A stretch of DNA of 64,000 nt from contig CM074805.1 of assembly GCA_037447605.1 (NCBI GenBank), forward strand, positions 2,327,361 through 2,391,360, read 5' to 3'. Shown here in pieces: positions 5,570 to 51,235 of this stretch. This DNA is from Zygnema circumcarinatum SAG 698-1b. Lineage: Eukaryota; Plantae; Zygnematophyceae. Under the pieces are notes generated by a model. It was not told the origin of the DNA and made no database searches. It saw nothing but the letters and a program-made list of their open reading frames with translations. Both the position numbers and the translations under genes were made by a program. How positions within the stretch are numbered: position 1 is the stretch's first letter; every line of letters starts with the position of its first letter.

Positions 5570-7954
5570 TCCCAAAGAAAGCCATGATCGACACTGAGCT
5601 ATGCTAATAGCCTGGCCCAAGCAAGTGATGAAGGCTGCAGGGGTTAAGTTGGACAAGACGCTCGAGCCCATTCCCCGATATGTGGGGGTAAAGGGGAGTC
5701 TACATGAAGGATTGGGCAGTGCCCAAGTGATCATCAGCCTTGGCGAGATGGGAGCCACGGTGAATGCGGTCATCACGGCCGCTGAGCACTATTCTATCCT
5801 GCTGGGCTCAGATTGGCTCATCGCGATGGGAGCACAAATCGATCTGCCATGTCAGCCTTCAAGACTTATCTATCGGGCGACATCGCTTCCTTCCCCATCA
5901 TCATCCTCGAGTCCCCATACCTCCTGCTTCTAAACGCCACGCCACGGCGCAGGTCTCCTACCCAGAGATCACCATGTACCATGCTGTCGGCAGCCCCCAT
6001 TCTTCCTACGGATCGGCTAATTCTGATACCGATGACGAGACTTCCCCTCCTGCTCCCCCGAGTCCAGCCCTCTGTGCGCCGACGGAGGAACTTTTTGTCA
6101 CGGCGGATAGTCAAGATCCAAATTTTCCCGTTTCACTCCAGACCATCGCGATGAAGAGTGGCCGGAGATAAGAGTCGATGCGACAGCAGCATCTCGCACC
6201 GGACAAGCATTCTCAACTACGCTGGGTGTCGCCAAAACCACCTTAGTTTTCGCACTCCATATTCACTCTATTACTCCAAGAAGACCCACCTGACAGCACC
6301 ACATCATACGTGATGCACCTCCCGCGGATGACCATGACTCCCTACCGCTCACGCCACAGCCGATGTCGAATCCATGACGATGAGAACGCGGCGTACCGCT
6401 TGATGGAACTCGAGAAGGGCCTTGGGCCAAATCACCGTTTCCGCTCAAATCAGATGGCACACTTCTATGGAGACCATCGGAAATCAATGCCGAACGGCGG
6501 GATCCCTATACATACCGATGTGGACTCCTATCTCCACTCTGTCTCCATGACCGTGGTTCTCTGCACTTGACATGTAGTCCTTTTCCGGCATCCTCGCGAC
6601 AGCTCTATCGCTTAAGACAGCCACGTGCCCACGCCGCCGCAAGTGCGCGGACGGTGCTTCCTTTGGGCTTCAGTAACGCAGCCGGCTCACCAGCCTGGCC
6701 AACTGTGTTCGCCCCTCGGCCGCCTTCGCGAACCTTACGTGGATGATGCTTCGATCCACAGCAAGGACTGGTCCTCCCACCTGCAACACATTGACCAAGT
6801 CCTTCAACAGCTCATCAGTGCGCGTCTGAAGATTGCACCCAAGAAGTGCAAATGGGGCCACCAGGAGATCACTCATCTCGGGCACCGCCTCGGCATCAAT
6901 GGACTGAAACCATCACTCGACAAGATTGAAGCGATTGGCCTTATGCCGATTCCACAGAACCTCACTCAGCTCAAGTCTGTCTTGGGACTCACCTCATTCT
7001 ATCGCCAATTCATCAAGGGCTATGCCCCATCGCCGCCCCCATGCCTTGGAGAAGACGGAGTCCACTACACACGGAGCCGAAGCGCGTGATTTGGCCTTCC
7101 AAGCCAAGAGTGCCCTCCTTCGTGCCCTTGTCCGGTGATCCATTCGGACCCCACCCCGCCTAATTATCATCGACGCTGATCGAGTCGACGGGCTTTGGGG
7201 CGCTTGCCACTGCCTTCGATGGGGAACACCCTCGGCTTCCATTATGCTAGCAGGTTTGTCTCTAAACCCAGACCAAGTACAACCCCATCGAGGGTGAGGC
7301 AAATGCTATTCTCTCGGCAATCGAGAAGTTCGGGGTTTCCACGGCCTACCAGCCCCATTATCATTAGATCACCATGCCACTCACTTGCCACACATCATGG
7401 CTACCCTACGACCTAAGTTTGCACGAAGTGATAGTTGGAGGAGAAGCAATGTACCAAGGTCACCTGACCGCTCCTACCGGCCACGGCAATGCCGACGGGC
7501 CTCGCCGCAACCTTCGCCTCCCTCCTCCTGGGTCACGACCGCCGCCTCAACCCATCCCTCCACCCACCCGCGTGAACCCAGAGCATCTTCCCATTGAGAT
7601 TTTTATTGCCGATCAAGACCTGCATGACGTCATATTCGCAGATGGGCTGATCGATATTCCGGCCATGGCCACCACCCTCCATCGCTGGCAGGACCCTGAT
7701 TTCACCCACGGCCACCCCCATGCGGATCCGTGGGAACTCCTCATGGATGACGATGGCGACGCTCCCTTACTTCCTCCCCATTTCCCCAGCGCCAATGATG
7801 TCCATTCAGACTCCTCCCTTCTGCGCTACGTCATGACCCGCACATTGCCCCCTTTTATCACGGACACCGAGAGGGCTCGGCTGCTCCGCCGCTCTCGGAA
7901 TTTCTCTGTTGATGATGACGGACAGATTCTGTACCTCCCCTCTGGCCTTCCTGT
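5570..7954 (+). pseudogene. pol remnant (protease - reverse transcriptase - RNase H), frameshifted
   Basis: KAMIDT (frameshifted DTG active site) and ILLGSDWL at about 5580-5820. FYGDHRK/INA resembles FCVDYRKLNA at about 6460-6500. YVDD...KCKWG...HLGH...VLGLTSFYRQFIKGYA at 6735-7025. RNase H-like EANAILSAIEKF at about 7295-7330. Confidence 0.85.
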
Positions 7955-7964
7955 NNNNNNNNNN
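7955..7964. other. Assembly gap (10 N placeholder); others at 8643-8652, 18772-18781 and 20338-20347
   Basis: Runs of N; the true gap lengths are unknown. Confidence 1.
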
Positions 7965-8459
7965 CGCGACGTGACATGTGTGTCACGTCACGGACGCCAT
8001 ATTATATAGTGCATAGTTTTATTATGGGAAAAAAACCCACCCACACTACTTTGTCATAGTCTCGGGTCTTATTCTGTGCCTGCTCGTGCTGCTAGGCTGC
8101 CTACACTTGTGTCGTGAGGTAGTGAGTGAGAGGGACCTTGAAGTAGTGGGAGAACTTCATTGTGGGAAGACAGTTTTATTATAAGGAGTTTTAGAGCCGT
8201 GAGCTTTCTCCTAACACTCTCTCATTGTGATTTCCGCTGTGCTTGTATTGTAGCTTCATTCTGTTGTTATGGGCGATGAGTGAAGTAAGATAGAGCTTTG
8301 AGTGTTTGAATGTCTTCATCCGTGGGAACTCAAGTTCCAATGGAGGGCGACACCCGAGGTGGCGCCGGAAGTGGGGAGCAAACCCCTGCTTCAACAGTCA
8401 GGCCTCTCAGTGGGCAGTAGGCCAATCAGGGACTGTCACTGTTGAGGCTCAAGATCTAT

Positions 8460-8883
8460 TGTCAGTGCTAAGTAGATGGGATGTCAATGATGCTTGTTTG
8501 TCTTTTAGTGCTGGGCTTAGTATTTGTATTTGCTGTGTGGTTTGTTGTCCTGTTCTTCTCTTCTTCCTCTTCAGTTCCAGCAACAGATGCTAAGTGTGAG
8601 AGAGAGAGAGAGTTCCATGCCATAGATAGAGAGAGAGAGAGANNNNNNNNNNGAGCCCCCAAGGAAGGGCTCTTTGCGCATCGAGTCTAGCCGCCGGTGG
8701 GAACGTCTTCAGGATCTCTACGTCTTCCGCTGCGCGTACCTCTGAATCCCCCGGATCCTGGCTCTATGCTGCAGGCAGATCCACAGAACCAACCCAACCC
8801 TTCATTAGTTTCAGCACGCACGCGCGGGTGGCCGTACAGCACCTACAACTAGCTCAGCAGTCTCCTCTTAACCCCACTTATCT
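8460..8883 (+). repeat. 3' LTR (interrupted by an N gap)
   Basis: Homologous to 2129-2825. 8787-8884 is identical to 2729-2826 and is not followed by a PBS. Confidence 0.8.
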
Positions 8884-8892
8884 TGTGCTACA

Positions 8893-9151
8893 GCTTACGC
8901 AAAACTCACCTAAAATCCCCGCACGTGCCGCCGTAAGAGGCGCTCGCTCTTCTCCCTTTCTTCTTGGCTTCAATACGATACGATACGAAACTCCTCGATA
9001 CGATACGAGCCGTACTAGCCGTACGAGTTAGTAGCCGATATAGTACGATACGGTACGACACGTACGGTCCAACATGAACTCTAACATAATACCGCCCGCC
9101 TTTGGTAACACGAACCTCATATATGCAAAATCAATATTTTCGCCTCATATT
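8893..9151 (+). repeat. Right arm of the long inverted-repeat family
   Basis: Inverted homolog of 981-1368 (see that feature). Confidence 0.8.
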
Positions 9152-9554
9152 GGCCAAAACCAGGGTGGAAAATATGAGGACCCCCTACTGTACAGTACAG
9201 TACCCCCCCCCCTTCCCCCTCCCCCCTCCCCCCTTAATATTTTCCACCTTAGTACTTGCGTTACCCAAGAAATTCACCCTGATTTTGAGGAAACTACTTT
9301 TAGTACGGTAAGTCTGTGTTAAGGTATTAGGAGTGTTAATATAACCTGACCTATGTTCAATACGAAATCTGTTAACGGGTTTCGAACATGGGTCACGCGT
9401 GAGTAAAGATAGAAATTGTAAAAAGCGTACGCTATGTACGGCACCAATTAGATTTCGTATAGTCAATTGTACGGCACCCATAGGAGCTCGCGTCAGGGCC
9501 CGCCGGGCGGCCATGCGCTTCCGTACATAGAGAAACAGTACGGCCGCAGGCCGG

Positions 9555-9675
9555 ACTCTAACATAATACCACCCGCCTATTGTTAACACGGACTTCCTTA
9601 TATTTTCAAATTCCAAGATTTTCGCCCAATATTTGCCGAAACCATGGTGAAAATACTAGGGGGGGGTACTGTACC
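9555..9675 (+). repeat. Third, direct copy of the inverted-repeat family module
   Basis: GACTCTAACATAATACCACCCGCCTATTGTTAACACGGAC... matches 9077-9200 (GAACTCTAACATAATACCGCCCGCCTTTGGTAACACGAAC...). Confidence 0.75.
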
Positions 9676-10543
9676 GAACAACATTTTTTATGCATGCTTG
9701 CGTGAATGTACCAGGCATGTGCAGCGACGCATCCACTGCAAAAGTCTTGGCATTATTTTTAAGACAGCGACGCCATCAAACGAACATACAGAAGGGCATT
9801 ATGAAGAAGCAATGTGAAAGGTAACGAATGACCAACAAAAGGAAAGAACTACCACAACCGTCATGCTGCTTTGCAAAGCTGCCATGCTGCATGGTGCACT
9901 GTCACATGGTTCACATCCTCCCGCATCCTCTGCAATGTGGATGCCATGGGGTCGCTCTCTCCATTGCGAATTCTAGTCGAGCAGCTTGCCATGTGCACAT
10001 CTGCCACCTCACTGGACGCTGCTCGACGACAGTGTGCAAAATGGAGTAGGGCACTCAACGGAGGACTGCTCCTACAGGCAATAACCACTCTAGCACCACG
10101 TTGAAAGCTTGAACCCATGCCATGCCATGCCATGCCATGCCGCTCTTGGACAGGAGGGTGCGCGCGACGTGGCAAAAGGGCGCAACCAGGCACTCCTTGT
10201 CACAAGCGTGCTGGTCCTGTTTGCAGTCCCGTTCCAGCGCCGTTACCGCCCATGTAACCCCGCACGGCCAAGATCTCGTTGTCGGGATCCCGCGGTCGTA
10301 CACGCGAAGCCGCCTCGACGGACCCTCCGCGTCGCGACTCGCGAGTGCGGCACGCGTATCCTTTTCGGACGGCCTCGACCGCCTGCGGACGGCCCTGATA
10401 GGCTGGCGGACGGTAGTGCGCGCGGTCGTTAGCGCGGTCGCGGGGTTTGGAGACGGGGGCCGTCGGCTCCTTTCCTCCCTCCCTCCAGGTCTTCAGGGGC
10501 TGCGGCGGGCGGCCGGGCGGGCGGTCGGGCGCGCGGGCGGGCG

Positions 10544-10576
10544 TGTACTGGTGGGCGCGCAGTACAGTACTGTACA
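10544..10576 (+). promoter_or_regulatory. Cluster of 4 GTAC motifs (candidate copper-response elements) upstream of COPT
   Basis: GTGTAC...AGTACAGTACTGTAC just upstream of a strong donor AAG|GTAAGA at 10621. GTAC is the SBP-domain (CRR1/SPL7) CuRE core. Function is inferred. Confidence 0.4.
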
Positions 10577-10811
10577 GGGCGGGCGGGCCATGGAGCCGCT
10601 GCGGCTGCCTGCAGGTGAAGGTAAGATAAGACTGCTGTGGGGCGCTACGAGAGAGAGATACTTGCGGTTGCGGAGAGCAGAGGAGAGGATACTTTGCTGC
10701 TGCGTCTGCGTAGGCTATCTGCTGCACCGCGCGCCTTGGGCAACAGGGGTAGAGGACTTGCTTGGCTGTGGGTATGGATTCTATGCACAACCACGGTGCG
10801 GTCCCTCTCCC

Positions 10812-10813
10812 TC

Positions 10814-10857
<44 letters not shown>

Positions 10858-10872
10858 TCTCTCTCTTTCTTT
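10812..10872. repeat. (CT)n microsatellite / pyrimidine tract
   Basis: Long CT dinucleotide run, probably inside a 5'-UTR intron of COPT (putative 10621-11707). Confidence 0.85.
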
Positions 10873-11718
10873 GCTCTATAATGACCGACCCTGTCCTCAC
10901 TTGGTCAGGTTATTTGACTGATTGTTGCGGCTATCATAAGTGTGGTTTCCCTTCTCCTCTCTTTGACATTCGCCTCCTTTTCTGCACCCTCCTTTCTTCC
11001 TCGTCCTCCTCCTGCGCTTCCTCTTCCCCCCCCCTTCTGTTTCCATCTCCTTGTTCACCTCCCCCGCGTCCTTCTCATGATTCTTCTCTTTCTCGCCTTG
11101 TCTTCGGCTTCTCCACCTTCCCTTTCTCCTCCTCCCTCTCTTCTTACTCGTATTCGGTCTTCTCCTACATTTTCCTTCCTGTTGCCAAAGGCTGCTGGAC
11201 TTCATGATATTTTGCGCGTCTGCTATCTCTTCAGCTTTAATTGCTGACGCCAACTTCGATTGGCTTCGACGTCAATGCTTAGACGAGACTCGGACTTGCG
11301 AGGTTATGGTTACGAAGTCTTGGAGGTGATATCCAAGTGCGGGAAGGAAGATGCTGATGTTTTTTATCGGAGAGTTTGACTATTGGCTTTTTCTTTTTGT
11401 AACACAATTCTACATTCGGGTCGTTGGATATATGCCAATCACAAGCGTCTTTCTTCTTACATTCAAATGGCTGAAACGAATGTGCAGCTAGTAGCAGCTT
11501 CCCCTAACTTTGTACTTGCATCTACCATCGATTTCTTAACTTTTGACTCACGTTGACGGAAAGGCACTTCATTCAAGCACATATATTAGACATTACAGTG
11601 GAGACATTCTCTCCCCGTATCAGCAGATTCAGCTGCCAGAGACTTGAACTGTATATTTCATTTGTTTCTAATAGCCTTTTTATCTGTGTGGCGGCAACTC
11701 CTTGCAGATAGCGTGGAC

Positions 11719-12353
11719 ATGGGTAGCTCATCTGATTCAAACATGATGATGCACATGTCTTTTTACTGGGGCAAGGACGTGACTGTCCTTGTGAGTTCAT
11801 GGACGACATCAAGCACGGGACAATACATTGCGGCCGTCGTGGCCACGATCATCTTTTGTGTACTTCATGAGTTTATGACTACATTGCGAGTTGGCTTCGT
11901 GGCAAATTCGATGTCCCATTCTCCGAAGACCATTGAAACACCTGAGAATACAAAAGTTCCACTGTAAGCATCGAAGTTTCTCGTTCACATTCTAAGGTTT
12001 CAGCAGCTGGTTGGTTATGCTCAGCTATCTCAGAGATTTCTATTGTCGGACTTCTTGTCAGTGTGCGTCGAAATCCGTTACCTATTAATGGTTCTGACCT
12101 GGGCTTTCTTGGGGTGGCTGACGGTCGCAGGTTGCAGCGTCTTACAGGGCCAGCCTCCTTGGGAAACAAGGCCATTGGAGCATTTCTGTACGGCATAAAC
12201 GTTGCAGCAGCATATATCATCATGCTGGTGGTGATGACCTTCAATCTGGGTCTCTTCATTTCAGTCGTAGTAGGCCTTACTGTCGGGTTCTTCCTTTTTG
12301 GGTACGGAAGGTGCACGCCTAGTGCCTCTGCTGAGCTCTGTTGCCCGATGTGA
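11719..12353 (+). CDS. COPT: Ctr/COPT-family high-affinity copper transporter (2 exons: 11719-11963, 12062-12353)
   Basis: Met-rich N-terminus MMMHMSFYWG, TM2 motif MLVVM-TFN (MxxxM), GLTVGFFLF in TM3 and a C-terminal CC (ELCCPM*). The GT-AG intron 11964-12061 restores the frame. Confidence 0.93.
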
Positions 12354-12968
12354 GGCAGTCCGTAAATGTCGGGGTGTTAACTCCAGTGGAGAGTATAAAG
12401 CACGCTGAAAGGGTCCGGGTTTCCGCCTCTTACAATGTTTTGCAGAACCTTTTTCCCCCCTTGTAGGGTTGCTAGGAAGTGGCGGAGCGTGTCTTTTTGA
12501 AGTACATGTGGAATCAACCAGAGTTGGAATCTGGGTATTGTATAGATGTCGATACTGAGGAAATAAACATGGCTATTATTTCTTTTTTTGAACATTGACT
12601 TGAGCGTGAGCAGAAGTTAATTAAGTTCAACTTAACCCATGTTTTCAATCTTCAGACGGTGCCTTCATTGCTCGCACGTAAGCTAAGTTGCACGACCAAT
12701 CATGTACGTTGTTGCGATCGCAGACATGGCTTCACACCTGTCTTAGTATGCAGAGACAGAATGAATGAATGGGGGAGCATGTGGAGGCATGCGTGCTAAC
12801 CTAACGTGCCTACCATGAAGTTCTGTTCCGTCCCGTTCTTAGACGAGGGCAGGTCGAACCGCGCGACTGCAATGACAGAGATTTGCAGCTTTCCCAGTTT
12901 TGCGGTCAGTTTTAAAGAATGACAAAAGCTCATGGATTGATCTCACCGATTTAGAATCAGTCCTGATT

Positions 12969-13052
12969 TGTGGCATTGATCTCATTTCACGATGGCGATG
13001 CCATCAAATGTACATGGACAGAACTGGTCGCAAAGGACCTAAGCACAAAAGA
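12969..13052 (+). repeat. Copy 1 of a ~85-bp dispersed repeat
   Basis: TGTGGCATTGATCTCA..CGATGGCGATGCCATCAAATG.ACATGGACA..GAAC.GGTCGC.AAGGACCT recurs at 57563-57643 (+) and 63151-63223 (-). Confidence 0.75.
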
Positions 13053-14523
13053 GAAAACCTTGGAGCTGAAAGCTACGCCTAGGCTCAATAACACTTCAAG
13101 CCCTAGTTCTATGGCCTGCTAAGCGGCGCAACTTTGCTGCTAACGCCAATGAGAAAGTGCCACGTGGCGTCTAGTGGCACATTGTGAAATCCAACAGTTA
13201 TGGATGACATGAGGGAGTTGGACGACGTCAGCAAAAGTTGTTGGAAAAAGCTGGGCCATGAAAAGTTGGCCAGCTGGCTGGTTAACCGGTTTATAGGCAT
13301 GCGAAAGACTCGCGTGGCTGATCAAGTCTGACTTCGACCTGTTCTCCTACTGCGTCCGCGAGTACGAATCTAACCGAACCTGGTTCCGAAGCTGTGGTCG
13401 CAAAGGTCGGCTCCATCGGACGGCGGTGAGCCTCTGCCGAGCCACGACCTCGATGTCCAAAATAGTTTCACGCTCAGTTTCCGAACCGACGTGTTCAAGT
13501 CCGATACGGTGAAGCTTCGAGGCTCCGAAGATACGATACGATGCGATATATCGATACGATGGGAGCACCTTGGCCAGTTCGGGAAGCGAGGCGGGTCGAA
13601 AGCGAAGGCGAAAGGCCCTGGCGGGGTCCTCCGGGAAGGTCCATAGGAGGCGCTGTGGCGGTGCTGCGCGGGTGGCTGGTGGCTCTGCGCGGCATACTTT
13701 GGCACTGGCAGGAGGTGTATGTGAGACGCGCACACGCAAAATCATATTATGCATCATGTTTTTTTTCATAATGTTCGTGCTGGCACTATGACATGCGACA
13801 TATCCTGAATTTGGAAAGATCAATGTGACTGCATGCAATGTGTAACTAGCAGCATTTTGCGTGCGTTTTTAGGCTAGTCATCTTTGGTAGTCCATCAACC
13901 ATCTGACGTCTCTTCTTTTCATTTTTGGTGGAAAAAAATGGAAATATTTCGGCGCCAGCATGGCTCACATGTTCGATCCCGTGACTGAATAGAAGTGTTA
14001 GCTGCCTGAGAAGTAGTGAAGATATCTTTCTTCTCTTCAAATGCAATTTCGCATTCAATGCGATAATCACTCGTGAAGCTCCTCTGCCTGCCGGAAGACC
14101 AACAAAGTATTTCCTGCAGTAGTCACAGCTGCAGTAAATGTTTTCCGTACCGTTCTATTTTGCTGCAGTGCATGTTCTCTAACCAGGAACCTCCTGCTAC
14201 AGCTACAGCTACTCCTATAACTATTTCGCTCAGACAGGGAAAGTCCCTCTAAGGATGCCTATAACAGGACCACAGTGTACAGCTGACTGCAAACTCTCCT
14301 TGTTTATCGTTATTGGGGAGGTAAGTCTGCAACAAATGCATGAAATGGAGCTTTTTGGTACATGCCGGCTCACGCAGTATTGCGTGACTGCCGGAAGCAA
14401 ACCCGACTGCACCGGTAATCGACGCCTGCCTCTTAAGGTCATGCGAAGGTTTCTGTACAAGTTACTTTGAGGTGCTTCTCGAGCGGCATTTCCTACTATG
14501 AATTCTGCTGTCTGAATGTGCAA

Positions 14524-17500
14524 CTAATAGCCTGCGTACAGTGGAACTCCATCTCCCTCTCTCTGCGACGGTGGTTGGCTGCGGACCATGCGCGCGGGCC
14601 AGCCCTGCCAAATGCTGTGGGCATCGACCAAGTCTCCCGACAGCACCAGTGTGTGCTCGAGCAGCATCGAGTACTCCTCCATGGCTGCTCCAGAAAGAAG
14701 TCTCGAGTTTGTACGAAGGGTCGCTCCCCTTCCTACTCGTAGGCGATTCAAAGAAAACTGCATCAGACAAGCATTGAAGTTCATCAGTCCCTGCTGAACA
14801 TTGCATACACACTTCAGAATGCCATGTACATTCTGGGACTTGTTTGTTTACTCGTTTCATGTGGTGGCTTAGGCCATTCCTTTAGTTGTTTCACTCTGAG
14901 GACAGTCTCCTTGGATCGGGCAAAAGGGCATTGAGGCAGGTATTATTCACTCTTAGAGCTGTTTACCTCTCCCCTGCTGTTGATGTGCGCGACAAGGCTC
15001 GCGTCGTCGACCGCGACCTCGTCCTCGAGCGTGACCAGGTCCGGCTCGGTCATCATGGGGTCGCCGGAGTTGGGGTAAAGGCAGACGTCCTTCCCAATGT
15101 GGCAGCCGAGCGCGCGGAAGTACCACACAAGGTACGCGCTGCCAAACAGAAAGGACAGCGGGCCCTTCCCGCCCACCCCCGTCGACCGCAGCCCCTCGAT
15201 GCGCCGCATCACTTGCCATCTCTGCACCCGTCAGACATCCTTGAATGCAATGATTAGTGCGGAGGCACCTAGACTGGTGCAACGATGCTGCTTAGTTTAT
15301 TGCTAGCAGTCAGCGTGGATGATTGGGTAGCTTTGTTTCTGCACCTGGTTGTAGGACGACTCATCCCACGGGTATCGTCCCTCTGTGCGCCTCCCAATGA
15401 TGAGCCATTTTGCTGCCATAGCCAAAAGCCCCTTGCATGGTTCAACCACATGGTTGACCCGAAGGCCGATGCAATGGCTTGCCAACGAAATTAGTGAGGA
15501 CTAAAAAGTTAGGGACCTTACCTACGACGACAATTGATAGTGCAGTGATTGCCACCAACACGACTGCTGATATACCGATCACCAACATCATGGCATATAT
15601 GTTCAACAACCTGGTGGCTGCATGAGTGAAAAACCAGAAATATGATTTAGTAATATGATTTGAAAAATCGAAATGGAAAGCAATATGCAGGAACAGGTGC
15701 ATATTCAGGGTCCAGTCTGCTCACAATGATTCCCCCAAGTTTGATCCTTGAGCCAGGGATCAGCCCAGTGTACTGTGAGACCGAGCACCATGAGGATGGG
15801 GATGCCGTGGAATGCAGAGACGAGTACGGACATGGCCATGGCGAACGCCACGTGCATCCCCATGGGCCACGCCCAGTAGTTCTTGGCCTTGCGCTCAAAC
15901 ATGGCGCGCGCGTACGGCGTGGCGGTCGGAGCACTCTCCGCCGCAGGATGGCCTTCGTCCCACAGCGTGGCGTTGCCTTTGGACGACCCCACCCACGTGG
16001 ACCCTGCAGGGAAGCTCATGCCTCGCGCTGCATGCACACAATGCAAGAACAGGTTAGATAAAGCAAACCATTCTGCACAAACATCGCTGTCACCTCTCCA
16101 TTTTGTTCACGAAAAAATGGTGTGCACGGACCTGCAAGTGTGCCGGAGCCAAGTGTAGCATTTCGTCCAACAGTCACGCCGGGAAGGATAACGCATCTGT
16201 CGGCCACCATGCAGCCGGACTCCAGCTTAACAGGGGCTGCACTTCTTGCATCGCAGCACATGACTTCTGATCGGGAGCCGAATACAACATCATCGCCAAC
16301 TTCGAGTAGATCAAACTCCTCGATGTATACGCCCGAGCCCGGCCAATACACATGCTTCCCGACCTGCAGGATACCCAAATGTGTAAGTTGTACTTTACCG
16401 TCCAATAATATGCACAGGGACAATGCGAGCCCTTACAAGGGCTGTTCTACCCTTTTCAAGCTTATAGAATAAGTGCACACCTTCGCTCCCAGGAGTCGGT
16501 AAATGAAGCTGATGACACCGAAATTGGGTCCAACCAGCCCTGCCACTCCTCCGAGGTCGCGGCTTGGCATGAGTTGCTTCATAAGCCACAGTCGTATGAG
16601 GTTCCATTGTGTCCGATCACGCGGACCTGGCTTTATTTTTCCCACCACATTTCGCTTGATCAATATGACATACACTAGGTACAACACCGGGCACACGCAG
16701 TCGCGGACGACCTTGAGCATAAGGAAGAGAGGCAGGCGTTCAGGAGCCCCAAACCATAGAATGAGCTGCTCCTGACTGATGGCATGCAGAAACTGCGGCA
16801 GGCTGACGTATAGAAAGAGGCACGCGACCCAGGGCGCTATCCGCACCACCTTCCCCACAAGCACGATGGGATAGCCGACGAAGAGCAGCATCGGCCAGTG
16901 CGGCGAGGGGAAGCCCACTCGGCAGTAGTCGCGGTAGCGGGGGTCCGCGTCGAGGCTCTCGTAGGAGGAGGAGCACGGCGGCAGGCAGGTCCGGTCCGGC
17001 AGGGCGGTGCCCGGGGCGAGGGTCGTCTTCTGGCAGACGACGCAGTCCCGCCCGACGGCGACGGCGCGCAGCACCATGGAGCCGCGGTCGAGGCAGAAGG
17101 GCCGCAGCACGGCGTGGTCCACCCACGCGTTGTCGCCGATCGTGATCAGGTCCCACTCCCCGAGTTTCGCGCGCTCGTGCAGGAGGACGTTGCGCCCGAT
17201 CTTCGCTCCCAGCAGCCGGTAATACCAGATGTGCCCGTTCTTCCAGTACCGGAACATGCCCAGGTGGCAGATGTGCAAGATCTGCCGGACCAAAAACCAC
17301 CGCAGGTAGTAGTGTCCCCAAAGGGGATATCGACCGGCCTTGAATCGACCGATTATGATCCATTTAAAGGCGATACCGATAAGTGGCATGACAATGTCTG
17401 CACTGACCTTGATCATCAAAATGGCAACAAGTAGTTCTGGAATCCCCAAGTACGGAGCATAATGAACTATAACGACTCCTCTCCTTGTCACATGGGTGGT

Positions 17501-20175
17501 AACCGACCAGTTCTCCCGTAGAATGTGCAGGTAGAAAATGTAGAGCTGCCAGAGAGAAACACGGGAAATTGGGTACAGTAAAACGAGAGGAATGAGCTGG
17601 ATAAGCAGTGTTGTGGGAGAAGTCGAGCTCTTCGGTCGGCAGGCTGCGATCTCCGCCTCATCATCATCAAATACCTTCTCAAACCCCGACTCAATGTCTC
17701 CCTGCATTCCAGCATAGGACGGATCGTCGGACTTATGTTTGGCTGCATTGGCATCCAACAGCCCTGTGATCATCTCTCCCATCTCCCCCACAGTGCGGTG
17801 CTGGAAAACGATCCCTGCGGGGAGGGCGAGGCCCAGCTGCCGCCGCAAGTGGGCCACCATGCGGCCCGCCGCGAGAGAGGAGCCGCCGAGTTCGAAGAAG
17901 TCGGCGTCCCTCCCGATGTCCCGCAGCGGCACGCTCAGGACCTGACTCCACGCGGCGGCCACCGCGAGCTCCGCGGGACTGGCCAGCGTGTCCTTGGGCC
18001 GCACCGCCTCCTGCGGCAGCGCGCTCAGATCGACCGTCCCGTCCTTCAGGCGGGGCAGCACGCGGCCCGCAGCGGCGGCGGTGGGGCCCACCACCACCAC
18101 ACTCCGCGGCCGCACATACGCGTTCAGCTCTCCGCGCACCATCTCGAGAAGGGCCTTGCCGTCCTGCTCGCTCCACGCCTTCTCGTCTTTGGGCACCACA
18201 CACGCGACTGCATTGCCGCGCATGTAGCCAATGCCTGCGTCAAGCAGGCGGCCTTTGCCGGCCGCCTTGGAGAGACTCTCCTCGGCGGCGAGGAGTTCGT
18301 CCTGCAGGCCGATGGGCAGCATGAGGATGGGCACTGTGAGGGGCGAGCCCTTGGGGGGGCAGGCGGCTTCATAGAGGCGGGCGGTTTGCGGCTGCGAGTC
18401 GTCCACTGCCGCCATGGCGAGCCGCTCCGCGAGCTTCACGCGCTGCACTTTGTTGGCGGCGCCGGTCGGGACCGCGTCCATGTACACCGCCACCACGGGC
18501 CACTTGGCGGGATGCAGCCGCTCGCCCACAAAGCGATGCAGCTCTTGCAGGTCCACTCGGGGATACCCCGCGTGTATCACCAGGACCACTCCCACCACCT
18601 CCTGCACCCGCCACCCTTCCACTCTGCTCAGACCACGGCTCAAGCGGGAAAGAGGGCTCTACGAGACTGACTCTCTACACTCTCTCACCCTCGGAGATGA
18701 GAATTCAAAGGGGCTTTGGATCGAAGAGGCACAAAAGGGGGCTCACCTGCAGCACGTCATGCGGAGCTGAGNNNNNNNNNNAGGCCCTGCAGGGCACTGT
18801 GGCCCCTCCGGCGAGGACGGGGGCGAGCAGGTTGCGCACTATCCCGCCCACATGGAACAGCGGCATCATGTTCAGCCCGACGTCGTCCGCGCGGAGACCC
18901 CACGAGCTCACCACGAGAGCCGCTCCGATGGCGAGATTCTCCACCGTGTACGTGACCACCTTCTTCTTGCCGCTCGTGCCGGACGTGTGCAGGACCATGG
19001 CCACCTCCGCGCGGGCGAGGGGCGCCCTCGGGAGGGGCCCCACGCCGGAGCGGGTCCCGGTCCCGCGCATGTGGACGACGACGGCCCGCGGCCGCCTCGC
19101 GCAGCGCAGCGAGAACAGCCCGCAGACCGCCGCGCTGGGCAGCAGCTCCACCACGCGCAGCCCGCCCGCCTCCAGGGCCTCCCGCAGCCCGCCCTTCAGC
19201 TCGCTCGCCGCCATTGTGTCGCCCCCCCCCACCACCACCGTGCTCACTCCCACGCTCTTCAGCTCGCTCACTATCTCCTCCTCCGTGTTCTGCACACAGC
19301 CAAGGAGGAGAGTCATCATTCTATTACGACTGACTAAAATGGGATCCTGCGCCGTCACTACATCCATGGAATGTTTACTTTTCTTCTTCTTCTTTTTTCC
19401 CTTTTCATTTTTTGGGGCCGAGGGAATTGCAAACTCTTTTCGCAATTCCTTTGTGATGGGGAGCGTTCTTTCACCTGCGGGTTGACAGGCGCGCAGGCGA
19501 TCGAGTTGATGCAGGCCACGATGCAGACCGCCATCTCCGGCCCCCCCGGCAGCACGAGGCCGAGGCGCGTCCCCGCCGCCACGCCCAGCGCGTCCAGGCC
19601 CTGCGCCGCGACCACCCGCCCGCCCGCTCAGCGCCCCTCCCTCCCTCCCTCCCTCCCTCCCCCGCCCGCCGCCGCTGCCACTGCGCGCGTGTCTGAACGG
19701 ACCTGCGGGAACTCCACGGCTGCCACGTAGGCGAGCTGCGCGTGGCTGAGAGGCTGCCGCTGGTCGGCGGCCATTATGGCCGCGCCGCTACTGCCACTCC
19801 CCGGCAGGAGGTCCGCCATGCACTCGAACTGCACCCGCCCGCACGCAGCCGGACTGAGGGAGCGACCTTGAATTGGGCAGAGAATGGGATTGAGGTGAAG
19901 GCAGTTGCTTCGCATTCGGCTGTCTTCCTCACTTCGAGATGGCTCTTCACGAAGGCTCCTGAAAACCCATTGCTGGCGATCTGGGAGCAAAACTCCTCCG
20001 ATATGGGCACCCCCCGCCATGGCTTGCTGCTGGAGAAGCGCCGCAAGAGCTTTGAGGGCGTGCGAGGAGTGGCCAGGCGCGGCGTGCCGCCACGTGGGCT
20101 CTGCCACGCGCCCGCCTTCAGCTCGCTCAGCGTGTGGTACGCCCCGGGAGAGGCTGCGCCCGTCGGGAACTCCAT
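14524..20175 (-). CDS. Pls-like (epsilon-poly-L-lysine synthetase architecture) membrane-bound single-module NRPS-like enzyme: A - T - 3x(2TM + left-handed beta-helix)
   Basis: Exons (minus strand): 20175-19933 (least certain), 19828-19703, 19600-19475, 19289-gap-18747, 18601-16481, 16363-16132, 16027-15725, 15617-15526, 15431-15345, 15221-14967, 14757-14524. All checked junctions are GT-AG and keep the frame. Motifs: A3 HTSGTSGKKK, MPLFHVGG, A10 NKVQR; T domain DFFELGGSSL (Ser codon 17876-17878); three repeats of Y.R.LG..[IV]G (YYRLLGAKIGRNV, IYRLLGAKVGKHV, YFRALGCHIGKDV) with hexapeptide periodicity, each preceded by hydrophobic helices and (K)W.IIG or ..VVG; ends QGWPA. Confidence 0.88.
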
Positions 20176-20204
20176 GGCGGCACGTGTCGCGTCGTGCCGC
20201 GCCT

Positions 20205-20435
20205 TCCTCCCCTCCCTCCCCTCCTCCCCTCCCTTCCCTCCCTCCCCTCCCTCCCCTCACCTCCTCCCTCCCCTTCCTCCCCTCCCTCCCCTCCCCTCCT
20301 CCCTCTTCTTCCTCCCCTCCCTCCCCTCCCTCCCCTTNNNNNNNNNNCCTCCCTCCCCTGCCTCCCCTCCCTCCCCTCCCTCACTCCCCTCACTCCCGTC
20401 CCTCCCTCTCTTCCTCCCTCTCTCTCTCCCTCTCT
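20205..20435. repeat. C/T-rich low-complexity tract (CCCT)n with an N gap, upstream of the NRPS-like gene
   Basis: Seen directly; it generates several spurious Pro/Ser/Leu or Gly/Arg ORFs. Confidence 0.9.
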
Positions 20436-22576
20436 CCCTTTGGACCCAAATTGAGTTATTGTTTTTGTTCCCGTTGCGGGCGACATCGGACACTTCATTC
20501 ATTAAGATACACCGACATTCTCAAAATCGTGTTTTGTCGAAAGTGACGTTTCTGACCAATAGGCGTCGCGGTTTTGAGCCGAATCTATCGTTCGTGATTG
20601 GCTGGATCTGGCCTCTGGGCGGTAAGCTTGTCGTTTGGCATGTCGCCGCGGCATCTCGCTGACGGCCGGCGATAAATGCCGGCCGTCAAGGTTTTGCCGG
20701 CGTTCCTTCAAATAGAAATTTTGCCGGTCACTACCGATACGACGGCGATATGGCGATATGGCGATATGTTGCAAAATGTGACTTTTTGAGGTAAAACTTC
20801 GTACAGTTCCCATTGCCGTCGGTGGATACGCGCAATCATTGAGGATCAATAGTACCAATCACTAATTGCCATGTGGCATATTTTGACACGTGGAATCGGC
20901 ACAATTTGTCGGCTCTCATCATGAACCGGCGAGATTCTGTCGGCCCGTCCACAGTGACACGTGACAGGGTGGCTAACGGCTCTGCTGTAACAGCCTGAAG
21001 GTGATGTACGAAATATCGGTTCTGCTGTGATATCCTGAGCATTGATTGTACGGTCGCGCGTGCAGCATCGCTTGATGGGGCCTCTGTCTCTATGCCTAAA
21101 TCTTGATGTTCCGTTGAAACAGAACTGCCAACGCAGCTGCAAAGGACCGTTTGAGGCTCGCTGGCGTACCCCCGCTGGGTGGTTCCTGGGAGGAGGAGAG
21201 GGGCAGGGGGGCGGGAAAGCCATGGCGCGGAGACGGCTCTGACCGCGGAGGGGGCGTCATGTGCCGTCCATGCAGTGGGGGGTCCCAAGCTTAAAAAACC
21301 CTAAAAACCCTGTTTTGGATGCGAACGAGCGGTACGGTGAGTACGTTTGGGTGCACAACGTTCGTCAAATTGACTTGCGCTTTTCGCACCGTCGACTTGC
21401 AACAGGTTCGGCACAGGTTCCGCAAAACCACCACTATCAGTCATCAGTCACTTTCCCTTTCGCAGTACTGATCGCCCTCAGTTCCTCAACTTTTGTAAAG
21501 TTTGATACCCCCTAATGCAGATTTTCTCAAATGAAATCTACGGATAGCGTCGCCGTTTATGCAGTGTAGAAGAAGCAGTCAATGTTTGCTTTTGCGCTGC
21601 CTGTTGGGATGGATGCAGGGGTCTGTGGCATCCAGTGGGCTGCTGACCTTCTCCACTTTGTGCTATGGCTGTTGTGTGGATTCAAACCAATTCTTTCCTT
21701 CTGCAGCACTTGAATTGTTTGCTGCGGCATGGCGCAAAAGTGAATAATTGATAACGGGGCGCATGTGGTGTCTGCGCCACGCGGTGAAGGCTACAGACCC
21801 TGCCGAAGGAGTCGTTGAACACTTACCAGCATCGCTCTGTTGGCCAAGTCGAATTGATAGTGTTAGTTCCCTTTGCAGACGTTTCCTCACTCTCTCTTCC
21901 GACAGCAGCAACTTCATCAGCTGGTTTCCCCTCTGTAGTCAACATTTCAGTCAGAGAGAGCGGCAAACGTAAAAAAGCAAAGAAAACATACAAAGACCAC
22001 ACAAAAATAATTTGGAAAATGCTATGCAACCTAAAACTCCATTAATAATAATCCAGAGGTGGTTTACAAATGATAAGTTAAGCACACAACCTTACCTTAT
22101 CACTTAAACCCTTTCCCTGAAAACCCGAGCTCGAGCTCTCTCAGCTCCCCACCACCTCCACTCAACTCAAGAGTTGACTGCACAAGTGTAGACAGAAGTG
22201 GTAAATTTTACGCTTAGCCCTAGCCTCCTATTTAAGCTTATGCGCCGCAAGGAGCTGCAGCTTCTTATTCTCCAACGATCTACCGCTCCATTATCATCCC
22301 TTGTTTGTCGGTCCATGTTCGCCGCTGCCTGCCCGCCCTGGCTCCTGTCCTTTCGCTTGCAGGCTGCTCGCCTAAGCATGTCCGTCTCTGTGACTCTCTC
22401 TCCCGCTCTCTCTCCCCTAGACCGATGGGGCCTCTTACCTGCAGCCCTTACTTGCATCGCGCCTCTTACCGCCACGTTGCGGCCCCGGATTGGCTGCCCC
22501 TTCAGCCCAACCAACCGGGGTGGCATCTCGCGCCTGTAGGCCCTCGGAATAAGCGCACAATATTAGATAGCATATA

Positions 22577-24284: not shown

Positions 24285-27200
24285 CTAGCACCGCTCGAAT
24301 ATCTTGTACAAGTTTTCTAACGAAGCAATCTGCCGCACCAGCCAACCAAAAAAACAGGAAAAGTGGGAAAAGGCCCCATTGTCTAGATGCTGTGGCCGTA
24401 GGAATGACTACATTCAAACCTTTTTTGCTTTTTTAGACATCATGCGCCCCAGCAAACAGATTACTTGCAGGTATGAACAGAAAGGGACATATCAGATGAT
24501 GACATTCAGCGACGTATAGTTCTAGGTGCAAATGCCATTACAACCATCTGATCCGAAGCAGGGCTGACAAAGTCCCTGAAACGAAAGGGAGTGCTGAAAT
24601 CTAAGGACAGCGGCATCGAGAATGAGCAGCGATCAAATGGGCTGAAAGAAAGGTCAGCAGCGTGCTTGCTGCATATGAGTGAGAGAAGCTGGGGCAAGCT
24701 GACCTGCACAACTGTACCATCCGTGGCCATGCGAGAGGGAGGCTTCAGGAAAAACTTCAGAGCAGGGAAGAGCAGATGTTGGATTGTCCATTCCCTTTGA
24801 GCCCAGATCCTTTCTCTCTCTGCAATAGAGTCATCAGCCTCCGTCCCACCATGCGGCTGAGCATCCACTGAAGAACCTTCGCCTCTCTCTGCCTCCTGGC
24901 CCTCCCTCGTTTCATGAGCAGTCTCACCTTCCCCTCCTGCACCGACAACCATTTAAGCAGTATTTTTCAAAGGTTAATAGGCTCAGACATCGGTTCAGTG
25001 TCAGAGGCCATACACAGACAATCAGGGAGATGAGAAGGAAGCAGGCAGCCACTTCACCATGCTTATCGCCGCCCTTCAGTCCCTCCTCTCCCCCCTTGCC
25101 AGCCACCTCCTGCGGGGAAGGACGCTCGAGCAGCAGAGGATGGAGAGCATAGAAGTCAGCGATAGTAGACGCCAAGGAGTCAAAGCATTCCTTTTCGGTG
25201 TCCCAGTCGACCTGTCCACCCAACAAGTTGGCCAAGGGACGAATCATGAAAGTAGCTAATGCCCTTCTAAGACAGCAGCACGGGAGACTCCCACCTCGCG
25301 CTTCACTCCAAAAAAAAACTCTCGAACGAAGTGTTCTCCTGCAGACTTTACTCTCAAAACTGGCTCTTGAGGAGTCTCTGCTCACAGAGAGTCAGCATGC
25401 ACAGAAAAACATGCGGAATGCACGTCAGAAGGCTTAAGATCCATAAAAGAGGCAGATCTGCAGGCCAGATCTGCTCAAAATACAACGTACATCGTTCCCG
25501 AGTGCCAGAATGAAACTTGGGAGACGGTCAAGATCAGGCGTGTAATGGTCGAGCACTAATGGCAGCGTATGCAGCAGCCCATCGCTGTCGATTTCCAGGG
25601 AAAAATACTCTTGCAGCATCTCCGCCTTGCACTTCAACAGCTCCACATTCAACTGCATGCGGAGCCAATCACTCAGATAACCTTGAGCCACCCAGTTCAC
25701 CTCTCCATACAACCACTGTAAGGAACAATAACCTAGCATACTTGCAGATATGTGCGCTTTGGCAACATAGCCACCACCCTCTGCTTGATGAAACCCTACT
25801 GCTCGTTACGGAAAGCCCTACCTTGGCAATTTCTGCCTTATCCCCACTGCCGGATTGCCAGCGGCCTGCCCTCTCCTCGTCCTCGAGGGCCATCAAAAGA
25901 AGCTCTTCAAGGGGCGCCGCGCGGCTCAAGCGCAGAGCAGGACACCGCCCAAAGCGCTTTAGGGCCTGCTGCCGCACAAGCTCCTTGCTGCCCTCTCCAG
26001 GCAAGCAAGGCCCCCCAAATGAGCACTACAGGACCTCGCCATCTATGGGGACATAGACGTTCCTTCTGATGAATTCTATGCAGATTGCGAAGGTGCAAGG
26101 CCTACATTTCATCTCATAATTGGAGGAGTATGCGAGGCGAGCATATACCTAAGAGAAGCGATGTTGAGCAAGTAGAGGCGGGTGGTATGCTGAATCACAG
26201 CCATGACATCATCCGCCATGCCGATGTATGTACAATGCTTAACAATCTCCAGAAGTCCTGCACAGCACACTTCCTCACACTATTTAAAGCTAGCACCAAG
26301 TAGTGGAGGCAGCATGCCCTCCTCGGCCCCGGGTTACTAGAGCACGAACGACTAATTAACGAGTATTTTTCACCTTCACACCCCATTACTGTGCTTGAAA
26401 ATGCTCATTGTGGTTGCAGATACTGCTCCCTGTAACAAGCCCGTGATAAACCTGCGAATCTACCGATGGAGTACAAAAACTCGGATTGCTATAGCCGATC
26501 GGATCCCCCCCTGCAGTTCTTACTGGTCAACGAGAGGAGGAGCACCTGCATGGCAGCTCTGCTCTGCCTCCGCCTGCAGCTCCTGCACGCTCGTCAGCTC
26601 TGCGCTCTCTATAGGATTCCGCCGCTGCCGGACGGCCCTCCTGCCCGCCCGGGGGAGAGGGAGGGGGGGCCCTCGTCAGCTCCCCCACCAGCCAGGAAGG
26701 GAAGGAAGGGCAGAGAGCGGGAAGGGAAGGAGGTAGCAGCGCACCTTGTGGCCGCGAGGTCGGTGGGGGCACCACCGAGGGGAGGCGGAGCCTGGGGCTG
26801 CAGGAAGGCGTGAAGTCGGCCCGCGGGCTGCCACGTGTCGGTACGGACGAGCTTGTGCTCAGGGACCCTCTCAGACTGCGAGCCTGCACGTGCCCCGAAC
26901 CCATCGCCTGCTTCACAAATGGGGTTTTGGGATCGCGGGTTTCCCTGCAAGCTTTGGAAACTCGACTTTCCTTTCAACTTCCTGATCTAGTGTCTGTACC
27001 TGCACCTTCCCCGCACCCTATGCATGTGTTTTCACGCAACGCTTGGAGAATTTCCCTCGGGGTAACATAACGTTCACCTCAATTGGCTGTACCTGTCTGA
27101 CGCTGAGTAGCAGGTTCGTCGTCCTCCCTCATTCTGGCGGTCAATGGCACTGTTGACGCTCCCGGTAGAAGGGTCTGCATCAGAACTCATTCAATGAATC

Positions 27201-49166: not shown

Positions 49167-51235
49167 ATGATGCGCGGGGCAGACGTCGCCCCCAACCAGA
49201 CCATCTACATCAACAATCTGAATGAGAAAGTGAAGAAGGATGGTGAGCACACGGGGTTCCTGACCTCGAGGAGGGCCTGCCACAGCTACGCTTGCTCTAG
49301 TAGAGCGGGCGGGGAGCTTACGGGGATAGCGGGCTGCTGCAGAATTGAAGAAATCGCTATATGCGGTTTTTTCTCAGTTCGGGAAAATACTGGACATTGT
49401 CGCCCTGAAGACTCTGAAGCTGAGGGGGCAAGCGTGGGTTGCCTTCGATGACATCACCGCGGCTACAAATGCGCTCCGCCAAATGCAGGGCTTTCCCTTT
49501 TACGACAAGCCCATGGTAGGGTCATCTGATTCTTCCTAAGAAGCTCCTCTGCGAATGATTTGTTGAACGTGTATGAATCTGTTTCCCCGGATGCTTGTCG
49601 GTCGGATCATAAATTTAGGTTTAGGACTCTGTGCGTGCCCTTTTTCTGGATTTTCCTCTCAACTTAGGGCTGCTGCGGAACAAAAGGAACCAAGTGGAGT
49701 ATGTTTGAAGGTACTCAACGCCCTACTTCAGCTGAAGGAGGTTTATTATTTACATAGTCATTGAATTCCTGCGTGACCTACAGAGTGGCGTTGTTACGGA
49801 TACATAAGGTCATTTGCTTGTTGCAGTTGTTTAGCGAAATCCATTTTATTAGTAATATTAGATGCTGGCGTGCTCCTTACCCCTTGGGTATAACTAGGCA
49901 GGCAAAAGTATAGGCAGCATTACCCTCCAAATTTGAAGAAATGAACAGTTATCTATGCCGTTCGAAAAGAACTTGATTGTTCCAGTCGCGCCACCCAAGA
50001 CACTTCGAATTTGGGGCTCAATTTACAATATGATCATTGTGGTTGATGGAGGGTGTGCCAGTAGTAAGCTATATGCTGCAGTATATTTTAGCGCTCAGTA
50101 TTGCCTTGGTTGACGACATGTAGCAACCTTTTATAGATACCCTTAAAAAATAAGCCTGTACAGACAAGATGTCTGCCCTCTATCAAGGCGCGACACTTGC
50201 AAGATAGAGTTTTTCGAGGAGGCAAAAGGTTAAATATGGGTGTGTACTTTGGGTGTGTATCTCGTGTATTTCGCGCACGCCCTGCAAATGCAGTCACTGC
50301 TTATGTTGCGCAATTCGAGAAAATGACGCCCTTGTTTCGGTGATTGGATTTCGGAAAATTCAGATCCTTGAGTAGATGTAGGGAGAACTTACTGACCACA
50401 CATCTTCTACGGGCTTGTTGCAGAGAATTTCATATGCCAAGGCAAAGTCTGATGTAATTGCTAAAGCTGATGGCAGCTATGTACAACGAGAGAAAAGGAA
50501 GAATGAGAAAGGTGGGTTGAAATGATGTTTCTGTCCCAATTTTAGGGCACCGGTGCTTTTATATTTTTGGAGAACAAGCTGAGGTTGTTCGATTTGCAGA
50601 GCATACACTCACCGATCGTATCTTAATTGTTCCATTTGTGTGACATCAACAACTTGCGCTTGTCAGGTCGCAAGCGGACGGAACAGCAACAGCCTGCGGT
50701 GGCAGCTGTTACTCCCCAGTATGGCGCCGGCTATGGAGCAGCTGCACCGGTTTTTAACCTCGCCTTTAACCCATACACAATGCATTCTTGTCGTAGTTGT
50801 TCCAGTCTTCTGCACTCGCTGGCTTGGCTGCCTTCCTTTCCATGGCAACTTGCTGATATAGTTTCTGCTGTCAGAGCTTGTAACTCGTTTCTGATGTTTG
50901 TGCCCCTAGCCGTCAACTTATGGGCTGTTTTTTTGCGGTTTCAGATCACTCCTGCGTACGCGGCACCTGTGCAGCCAATTATCCCTGAGGCTCCTGCTCC
51001 ACCAAATAATACCCTATTTTTGCAGAATCTGCCACATGATATCAGCGATCAAAGCTTGACCGCCCTCTTCCAACAATTCCCTGGGTTCCAAGAAGTGCGC
51101 ACAATCTCAGCCAGGCCCGGCATAGCCTTTGTGGAGTACAAGGACGAGGGGCAGGCAACGGTCGCCATGCAGGGTCTGCAGGGTTTCATGATCAAGCCCA
51201 CCAATCCCATGCATATTACGTATGCAAACAAATAG
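49167..51235 (+). CDS. U2B''/U1A/SNF-family snRNP protein, two RRMs (exons ~49167-49242, 49344-49516, 50424-50511, 50668-50750, 50946-51235)
   Basis: [52 protein letters not shown]...[11 protein letters not shown]; RRM2 [12 protein letters not shown]...GIAFVEY...MHITYANK*. Confidence 0.95.

Follow-up and report, generated by a model that had tools for sequence, protein, structure and literature searches.

Structure of the gene

The analyzed window is a 64,000-nucleotide stretch of the genome of the streptophyte green alga Zygnema circumcarinatum SAG 698-1b (contig CM074805.1, positions 2,327,361 to 2,391,360 of the forward strand); all coordinates below refer to this window. Its minus strand carries a gene for a large membrane protein, in which an adenylating domain of the ANL type (A domain) and a carrier (T) domain are followed by three repeats, each consisting of two transmembrane (TM) helices and a left-handed beta-helix (LbH) domain. 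This is the layout of the homopolymer synthetases Pls and PosA. We regard it as likely that the locus is an expressed nuclear gene, intact in its visible exons, that encodes a membrane protein of a eukaryote-wide family of Pls-type enzymes in which the adenylating core was replaced by one similar to the oxalyl-CoA synthetase AAE3, and that the protein acts by the mechanism proposed below.

The coding region extends from the ATG at 20175-20173, in the context GCCGCCATGG, to the stop codon at 14526-14524 and comprises 11 coding blocks with a total product of about 1646 amino acids. It was traced as a chain of open pieces from 20175 to 14524 using the list of open reading frames (ORFs) and three-frame translation. 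All ten introns of the model are of the GT..AG type on the minus strand. The initial annotation of this DNA, made from the sequence alone, considered the frame intact wherever it is visible, and a single frame is indeed open over all visible exons; with 604 N put into an assembly gap in exon 4, the spliced model stays open in one frame over 1646 codons. RNA and DNA evidence was taken from contigs of public sequencing runs aligned to 14400-20300 (the labels X2, X7, and X8 denote runs or contigs). The lack of a transcript had been named as a point that could undo the annotation; joints in the RNA contigs, which are unstranded, confirmed six introns (14758-14966, 15222-15344, 15413-15521, 15618-15724, 16364-16480, and 18602-18746), and the gene is thus transcribed and spliced. 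In addition, three runs contain an RNA loose end at 19293 with the sequence ..IACAPVNP attached to exon 4, which covers the junction of exons 3 and 4. The gene consists of the following parts:

19933..20175, minus strand: exon 1, 81 amino acids, Ser/Thr/Arg/Pro-rich N-terminus with the ATG at 20175; open reading frame and GT donor, without an RNA joint
19703..19828, minus strand: exon 2, beginning of the ANL N-terminal domain (FECMADLLPG...) and of the family consensus; acceptor common to the ortholog of a related alga (contig L001)
19475..19600, minus strand: exon 3, ..GLVLPGGPEMAV..APVNPQ; Pfam AMP-binding on ORF 19358-19615
18782..19289, minus strand: exon 4 before the gap, P-loop TSGTSGKKK (18986-18960) and PLFHVGG; Pfam AMP-binding on ORF 18705-19445 (E 7e-14); 51% identity to P0191, the ortholog of the related alga
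18772..18781: assembly gap, 10 N; real length 604 letters, about 201 codons of the adenylation core (motifs A5-A8)
18747..18771, minus strand: exon 4 after the gap, ..SAPHDVLQ; RNA joint 18600>18746 in three runs, GT..AG intron
16481..18601, minus strand: exon 5, 707 amino acids; ANL C-subdomain, vestigial A_sub, T domain, TM1-TM4, LbH1
16132..16363, minus strand: exon 6, first part of LbH2; RNA joint 16361>16479; Pfam Hexapep on ORF 16016-16423 (E 1.7e-8)
15725..16027, minus strand: exon 7, end of LbH2 and TM5 (15866-15771); acceptor 16027 picked by fit to the family consensus
15522..15617, minus strand: exon 8, TM6 (15582-15526); RNA joints 15617>15725 and 15412>15522
15345..15412, minus strand: exon 9, KWLIIGRR..G.Y.WD motif; RNA joints; TIGR02353 match
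14967..15221, minus strand: exon 10, LbH3 with TEPDL (15050-15036) and AHINSRG (14990-14970); RNA joints 15221>15345 and 14757>14967
14524..14757, minus strand: exon 11, end of LbH3 (LLEHTL, QGWPA) and stop; TIGR02353 positions 641-695 (E 4.8e-8); RNA joint in three runs

For exon 7, the acceptor at 16003 was dropped, since the spacing relative to the family consensus fits 16027. At the 5' end, RNA contigs run colinear across 19720-20201. Starts at about 20020 or 19818 without intron 1 were set aside: this colinear cover may be explained by antisense RNA (joint 16382>19515), and exon 2 of the related alga, which uses the same acceptor, contains no Met and has a stop just upstream, so that an upstream coding exon is expected. 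Exon 1 is a candidate for this 5' exon.

In the candidate exon 1 (19933-20175), the N-terminal approximately 60 residues of the model contain many Ser, Thr, Arg, Pro, and Ala but few acidic residues and resemble an organellar transit peptide. Directly upstream of the ATG lies a purine-rich, (GGAGGG)n-like low-complexity tract (20200-20460) containing a second N gap at 20338-20347.

The pre-gap part of exon 4 ends in ...GGATVPCRA, and the post-gap part starts with ..SAPHDVLQ, followed by a 145-nt intron and the end of the adenylation domain; therefore, about 200 residues with motifs A5-A8 are absent from the window. The A domain named in the initial annotation needs correction on this point, as all of these motifs fall inside the gap and none is visible in the window. 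The real distance between 18771 and 18782 is 604 letters in both the DNA contig X2 (2140 letters, depth 157) and the RNA-derived contig X7, which also contains spliced joints. With the first base of a codon at 18782 and the third base of one at 18771, an open frame needs a gap length of 1 mod 3, which 604 satisfies. Between GGAT(V/I)PC(R/K)A and the AFS.. serine, the window model and P0191 on contig L001 both have a spacing of 211 residues, the respective sequences in P0191 being GGATIPCKA and AFSVHHDVLQ. Translation of the RNA loose ends on either side of the gap gives VPCRA/FDAAQFWDLL and HPAIKDTIAF/SAPHDVLQ (the slash marks the edge), in agreement with the family consensus Fd...FWd and lAFsvpH..lqE. 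Searches of protein collections with the 736-amino acid ORF of exon 5 and the exon 4 ORF returned no protein of this organism.

Carrier domain and C-terminal membrane region

The domain order proposed initially, A - T - 3 x (2 TM + LbH), was borne out by Pfam, NCBIfam, and hydropathy. Neither the exon ORFs nor full-length homologs contained condensation, thioesterase, or reductase domains in the Pfam and NCBIfam searches. The T domain (17962-17768) was recognized in the 736-amino acid ORF 16433-18643 as PP-binding (E 1.1e-15), along with AMP-binding_C and Hexapep matches; it carries the motif FFELGGSSL with the phosphopantetheine Ser786 encoded at 17878-17876. Hydropathy analysis revealed six strong helices in three pairs, at residues 876-894/934-961, 1115-1141/1169-1197, and 1383-1414/1442-1460. 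Within exon 5 these and the first LbH domain are located as follows:

17608-17552, minus strand: TM1
17434-17351, minus strand: TM2
17236-16958, minus strand: LbH1
16891-16811, minus strand: TM3
16729-16643, minus strand: TM4

The C-terminal repeats match Pls-type domains, as the initial annotation had assumed. The NRPS_term_dom model TIGR02353 (NRPS, nonribosomal peptide synthetase) matched five separate ORFs, the best with 108 bits (residues 403-722 of the 736-amino acid ORF) and the other exons with 16-32 bits each, the window being scored ORF by ORF and not as one spliced chain. The curated cut-off of this model is 423 bits; P0002, a full-length homolog with about 38% identity to the window protein, scored 203 and the bacterial Pls-type protein P0136 scored 590. 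An AlphaFold model of the T and C-terminal regions of P0002 (pLDDT 89.7, pTM 0.89), calculated from a 64-row alignment that included exon 5 of the window, contains three LbH domains, along with three long hairpins made of helices. Compared over its whole length with AlphaFold DB/Swiss-Prot, it best matched PosA of A. baumannii (E 8e-38, TM-score 0.61, 916 residues), for which a six-helix arrangement with an approximately threefold LbH assembly was predicted in the paper describing it. Single LbH units matched galactoside and maltose acetyltransferases and WcaF, and a sequence and structure search of PDB found no solved structure spanning the whole Pls-type C-terminal domain.

The window protein retains 41 of the 42 invariant or near-invariant positions of the T and C-terminal regions, including the T-domain Ser. 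In the 64-row alignment A1, which includes bacterial Pls-type proteins, E1543 (TEPDL) and H1563 (AHIN) of the third LbH domain are conserved in at least 90% of the rows. The window also has the carrier motif FF.LGG.S with its Ser, which at least 90% of 64 aligned sequences preserve.

Adenylation domain

The initial assignment to the Pls family would imply an A domain of the amino-acid-activating NRPS type, and here the closest matches gave a different result, an ANL enzyme similar to the oxalyl-CoA synthetases AAE3 and Pcs60. The part visible in the window best matched the FadD7, malonyl-CoA, and MenE ligase models of NCBIfam and not the NRPS model TIGR01733, which was matched instead by the bacterial P0136. 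For the complete A domain of P0002, the top PDB matches were the oxalyl-CoA synthetases 6qjz (1.8e-71), 5ie0 (1.1e-68), and 8aff (4.4e-56), with the next match at 2e-39. Among 247 long homologs, the A domain was of the AAE3 type in 199 and of the NRPS type in 26. AAE3 of Arabidopsis and Lathyrus and Pcs60 of yeast are the best relatives of the family domain in both structure and sequence, having in common with it the P-loop, PLFH, YGMTE, TGD, GRxKE, and A10 Lys motifs; in the window the ANL domain's own A10 Lys is encoded at 18451-18449 (AANKVQR) in exon 5. Unlike these enzymes, the family domain is fused to carrier and membrane domains, cannot have the free C-terminus of a type 1 peroxisomal targeting signal, and has lost the oxalate-binding residues.

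The latter are Ser289 and His319 of AtAAE3, which bind oxalate and are specific to oxalyl-CoA synthetases. The nearest ortholog, P0191, has Ala and Pro at these positions, and across 133 full-length family members the Ser289 position is Ala or Gly in 128 and the His319 position is Pro in 130. Altogether, five pocket changes relative to AtAAE3 (H216>G, C288>A, S289>A, A313>G, and H319>P) occur in 115-131 of the 133 members. The pocket is almost invariant in this set, reading H-V/I-G-G, N-A-A-G-G, and Y-G-M-T-E-C-M-P. In the window PLFHVGG is visible, with Gly at the H216 position, and the equivalents of Ser289 and His319 lie inside the gap. The family-wide replacement of the oxalate-specific residues makes oxalate an unlikely substrate. 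The near-invariant pocket together with these replacements suggests that the family would activate one conserved acid other than oxalate.

Between the A10 Lys of the ANL domain and the T domain, about 110 residues (18271-17939) represent a vestigial NRPS A_sub, the C-terminal subdomain of an adenylation domain. Its family profile matched the A_sub of bacterial Pls-type proteins with an hhalign probability of 98.7% (E 1.6e-16), and Pfam AMP-binding_C gave a weak match of 20 bits. NRPS structures align starting about 60 residues before the T domain, and the best PDB matches of an AlphaFold model of exon 5 (pLDDT 85.2) were segments of A_sub with a peptidyl carrier protein. A short BLASTP comparison of this linker with bacterial Pls A_sub gave no match, but the profile-profile comparison did find it. 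The A10 motif SGKVDR is changed to DGTVDL in the window, and the catalytic Lys is thereby lost. The simplest history would be a Pls-type ancestor in which the A core was replaced by a whole AAE3-like enzyme.

These data bear directly on the reading, in line with the initial annotation, of the protein as a true Pls/PosA-type synthetase producing a cationic isopeptide homopolymer of a diamino acid, which we find very unlikely. It has in its favor that the architecture and fold of the T and C-terminal regions are the same as in PosA and that homologs in lower eukaryotes are reported in the PosA paper. However, the A domain is AAE3-like rather than of the TIGR01733 type, and therefore such a product is unlikely. 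Besides, the position equivalent to Asp235 of the Asp235/Lys517 diamino-acid pocket is His (PLFHVGG), A_sub lacks its A10 Lys, and the TIGR02353 scores are far under the cut-off. The fungal epsilon-polylysine synthetase Epls of Epichloe festucae is 51% identical to Streptomyces Pls and keeps its lysine pocket, whereas the window protein is only about 25% identical to a bacterial Pls-type protein. The product is probably not polylysine. By both the TIGR02353 score and the type of A domain, the window protein is not a member of the Pls/PosA equivalog. The Pls-family layout claimed initially thus stands as regards the architecture, the carrier Ser, and the lack of condensation, thioesterase, and reductase domains, and fails as regards the A domain and the TIGR02353 threshold.

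Distribution and descent of the family

An exhaustive search yielded 491 representatives at E 1e-30 or better. Named members of the family were found in chytrids, Mucoromycota, Ascomycota, and Basidiomycota, in hundreds of fungal genomes including Neurospora, Fusarium, and Trichoderma, as well as in the cryptophyte Hanusia, the chrysophyte Epipyxis, Phaeothamnion, Mataza (Rhizaria), Artemidia, and the green alga Coccomyxa. In one Atlas cluster, members of known phylum mostly belonged to Chlorophyta. The named family members are annotated as hypothetical, as "Carrier domain-containing protein," or as "putative peroxisomal-coenzyme A synthetase." The family is characterized by a common domain order, a length of about 1550-1750 amino acids, and the motifs NAAGG, YGMTECMP, KW..IGR, TEPDL, AHIN, LLEHTL, and QGWPA. 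The 1646-amino acid model aligns end to end with P0002 and P0004 at 36-38% identity over about 1100 residues; NAAGG and YGMTECMP fall in the gap. A dinoflagellate gene with an NRPS_term_dom domain was described in a preprint as having no known function.

In a maximum likelihood tree of the T and C-terminal regions, the AAE3-type eukaryotic proteins formed a clade (100/100) apart from bacterial Pls. The window gene paired with the gene of contig L001 (100/100), this pair was sister to Coccomyxa (95/92), and fungi grouped broadly by phylum; the sampling of this tree is thin and its root is not established. The broad agreement of the family tree with organismal groups would fit vertical descent. 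Contig L001, of genomic origin, also carries kinase, PP2C, and UPF0426 genes, and its GC content at third codon positions (GC3) is 0.43 versus 0.78 in the window, therefore it comes from another species. Its ortholog, at 7846-13186, agrees with the window gene in the acceptor of exon 2 and in two exon boundaries, 4/5 and 5/6.

It is hardly credible that the gene stems from contaminant DNA or was acquired very recently from a fungus or bacterium. The nearest named full-length homologs are mostly fungal, as such an origin would predict, but the gene contains ten spliceosomal introns, has EMP70, GARS, RRM, and MLH1 genes as well as a retroelement for neighbors, and was present in at least 20 runs of the organism from eight studies. 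Moreover, intron positions are common to the related alga despite its different GC3, and the gene is placed outside fungi in the tree. Grouping with the related alga and Coccomyxa therefore fits descent in the green lineage better than recent transfer.

The window gene belongs to a widespread eukaryotic variant, and no description or characterization of this AAE3-type family was found in the open-access literature. Discovery of a family both widespread and characterized had been seen as a challenge to the initial annotation; it is widespread in fungi, protists, and Coccomyxa, while no characterizing paper was found in that literature. No land-plant name occurred among the 120 matches listed of 385. 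Since the host is a streptophyte green alga and not a land plant, the initial argument that land plants lack NRPSs is not directly applicable.

Transcripts and a second copy

Besides the sense joints, the following antisense RNA overlaps the gene:

15129..19515, plus strand: spliced antisense transcript(s), GT..AG joints 15129>15816, 16049>16254, 16382>16679, and 16382>19515

These joints have a good plus-strand GT..AG consensus and occur in as many as three runs.

The gene also exists in a second copy or allele. The DNA run X2 shows both letters at 14611 and 14631 at about equal depth, and its depth is about twofold where the two copies agree. RNA contigs often carry the letters of the second copy, including an in-frame 9-nt deletion at 18059, inside the vestigial A_sub. 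In the second copy, intron 3 is 162 nt shorter (19309-19470) and the C-terminal tail before 14581 is different; about 40 substitutions are clustered in one RNA contig (17288-17570).

It is accordingly conceivable, though improbable, that the window copy is a decaying or silent duplicate and that the observed RNA is antisense or derives from the other copy or allele. The X2 variants and doubled depth, the alternative letters, deletion, and different 3' tail of many RNA contigs, and the unread gap letters of the window copy are compatible with this. On the other hand, the frame is open in all visible exons, conserved positions are retained at 41 of 42 sites, and indels between the copies are in frame or intronic. 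Furthermore, RNA-derived contigs match the window exactly at 14400-14661 (X7), 18226-18606 (X8), and 17288-17350 (X8).

Proposed mechanism and comparison with known enzymes

The domain composition and conserved motifs suggest the following mechanism. The ANL domain would adenylate a carboxylic acid, presumably one common to all family members; given the family-wide replacement of the two oxalate-specific residues, this acid would not be oxalate. The ANL domain would next attach the acid to its own T domain through a thioester bond with the phosphopantetheine arm, and the T domain would then hand the thioester to the membrane-anchored LbH assembly, where the Glu of TEPDL and the His of AHIN in the third LbH domain may activate an amine or hydroxyl nucleophile. 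By analogy with surface or lipid acylation of the Dlt type, acyl transfer could occur at or through the membrane to a separate acceptor. Alternatively, if the monomer had its own nucleophile, repeated addition could produce a polymer as in Pls. Whether a single transfer or repeated self-addition takes place would depend on the identity of the acid.

In a variant of this scheme, the ANL domain would be a free acyl-CoA synthetase and the LbH domains would use acyl-CoA directly, leaving the T domain vestigial or only regulatory. In favor of it, the ANL domain is a complete enzyme of the CoA-ligase type that includes a C-subdomain and an A10 Lys of its own, CoA-dependent acetyltransferases are the most similar LbH folds among solved structures, and one part of the protein, A_sub, is already vestigial. 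Nevertheless, this route is unlikely, since a dead T domain would hardly keep FF.LGG.S with its Ser so conserved throughout eukaryotes. In addition, LpxA and LpxD, which are trimeric LbH enzymes, take carrier-bound acyl donors.

The carrier-dependent mechanism has a common logic with LpxA/LpxD and with D-alanylation by DltA, DltC, and DltB, in that an ANL enzyme would load a carrier and a membrane-associated transferase would pass the acyl group on to acceptors at the surface or to lipids; the analogy concerns the mechanism alone. The difference from the Dlt system is that all parts of the family enzyme are in one chain and the transferase would be an LbH assembly (threefold in the PosA model) rather than an MBOAT protein. 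With Pls and PosA, the family has in common a single polypeptide with adenylating and carrier domains, six TM helices in three pairs, each pair followed by a soluble LbH domain, of about 180 amino acids in the Pls/PosA layout, the absence of a thioesterase, and the conserved third-LbH Glu and His; a family member's T and C-terminal fold also matches the PosA model. It differs in the AAE3-like adenylating domain, the extra vestigial A_sub, the TIGR02353 score, the low identity, the position in a separate clade, and a product unlikely to be a diamino-acid polymer. Epls is also eukaryotic and membrane-bound with the Pls architecture. However, it occurs mainly in Clavicipitaceae, whereas the present family is eukaryote-wide with an A domain of the AAE3 type.

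Several points weigh against the interpretation of the locus as an intact, expressed gene with this mechanism. A stop or lesion may lie within the 604 unread letters of the adenylation core, and the residues at the S289, A313, and H319 positions of the window protein itself are predicted from the ortholog and the family. Introns 1 and 2 and the intron 16028-16131 had no RNA joint in the aligned contigs. The RNA contigs are unstranded and many carry variants of the second copy or allele; given these and the antisense overlap, only part of the RNA may be sense mRNA from the window copy. The catalytic role of the conserved Glu and His is a proposal based on their conservation.

As for the biological role, it is possible, although we put this forward only tentatively, that from fungi to green algae the family combines AAE3-derived loading with a Pls-type LbH assembly to make an undescribed product, either a polymer other than a cationic poly-amino acid or the result of carrier-dependent acylation. 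Examples could be a polyester or polyamide of a small bifunctional acid, or an acylated cell-surface or membrane acceptor. If so, the algal gene would represent the streptophyte lineage in a pathway possibly lost from land plants.

To our knowledge, the only role described for Pls-type enzymes is the synthesis of antimicrobial cationic polymers, in bacteria and in a small number of fungi. The gene described here is part of a eukaryotic branch of far greater size, whose loading domain was apparently swapped for an oxalyl-CoA-synthetase-like one with a non-oxalate pocket. The strict conservation of this pocket implies that fungi, several protist groups, and green algae may have one substrate and product in common. 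Since Neurospora, Fusarium, and Trichoderma are routinely transformed, the enzyme product and its site are directly testable. The green lineage thereby gains a membrane enzyme that depends on a carrier protein and, unlike a recent import, groups with the chlorophyte Coccomyxa.

Genomic context

The setting of the locus is ordinary nuclear. A biosynthetic gene cluster was ruled out, as the neighbors are housekeeping genes and a retroelement:

24506-25385, minus strand: C-terminal exons of MLH1
32361-33110, plus strand: GARS ATP-grasp exon
50627-51235, plus strand: RRM protein
58663-60618, plus strand: EMP70/TM9SF ORF, 651 amino acids, apparently intron-free
6625-7089, plus strand: reverse-transcriptase (RVT_1) fragment, probably the remnant of a retroelement, within a GC-rich region (4-8 kb)

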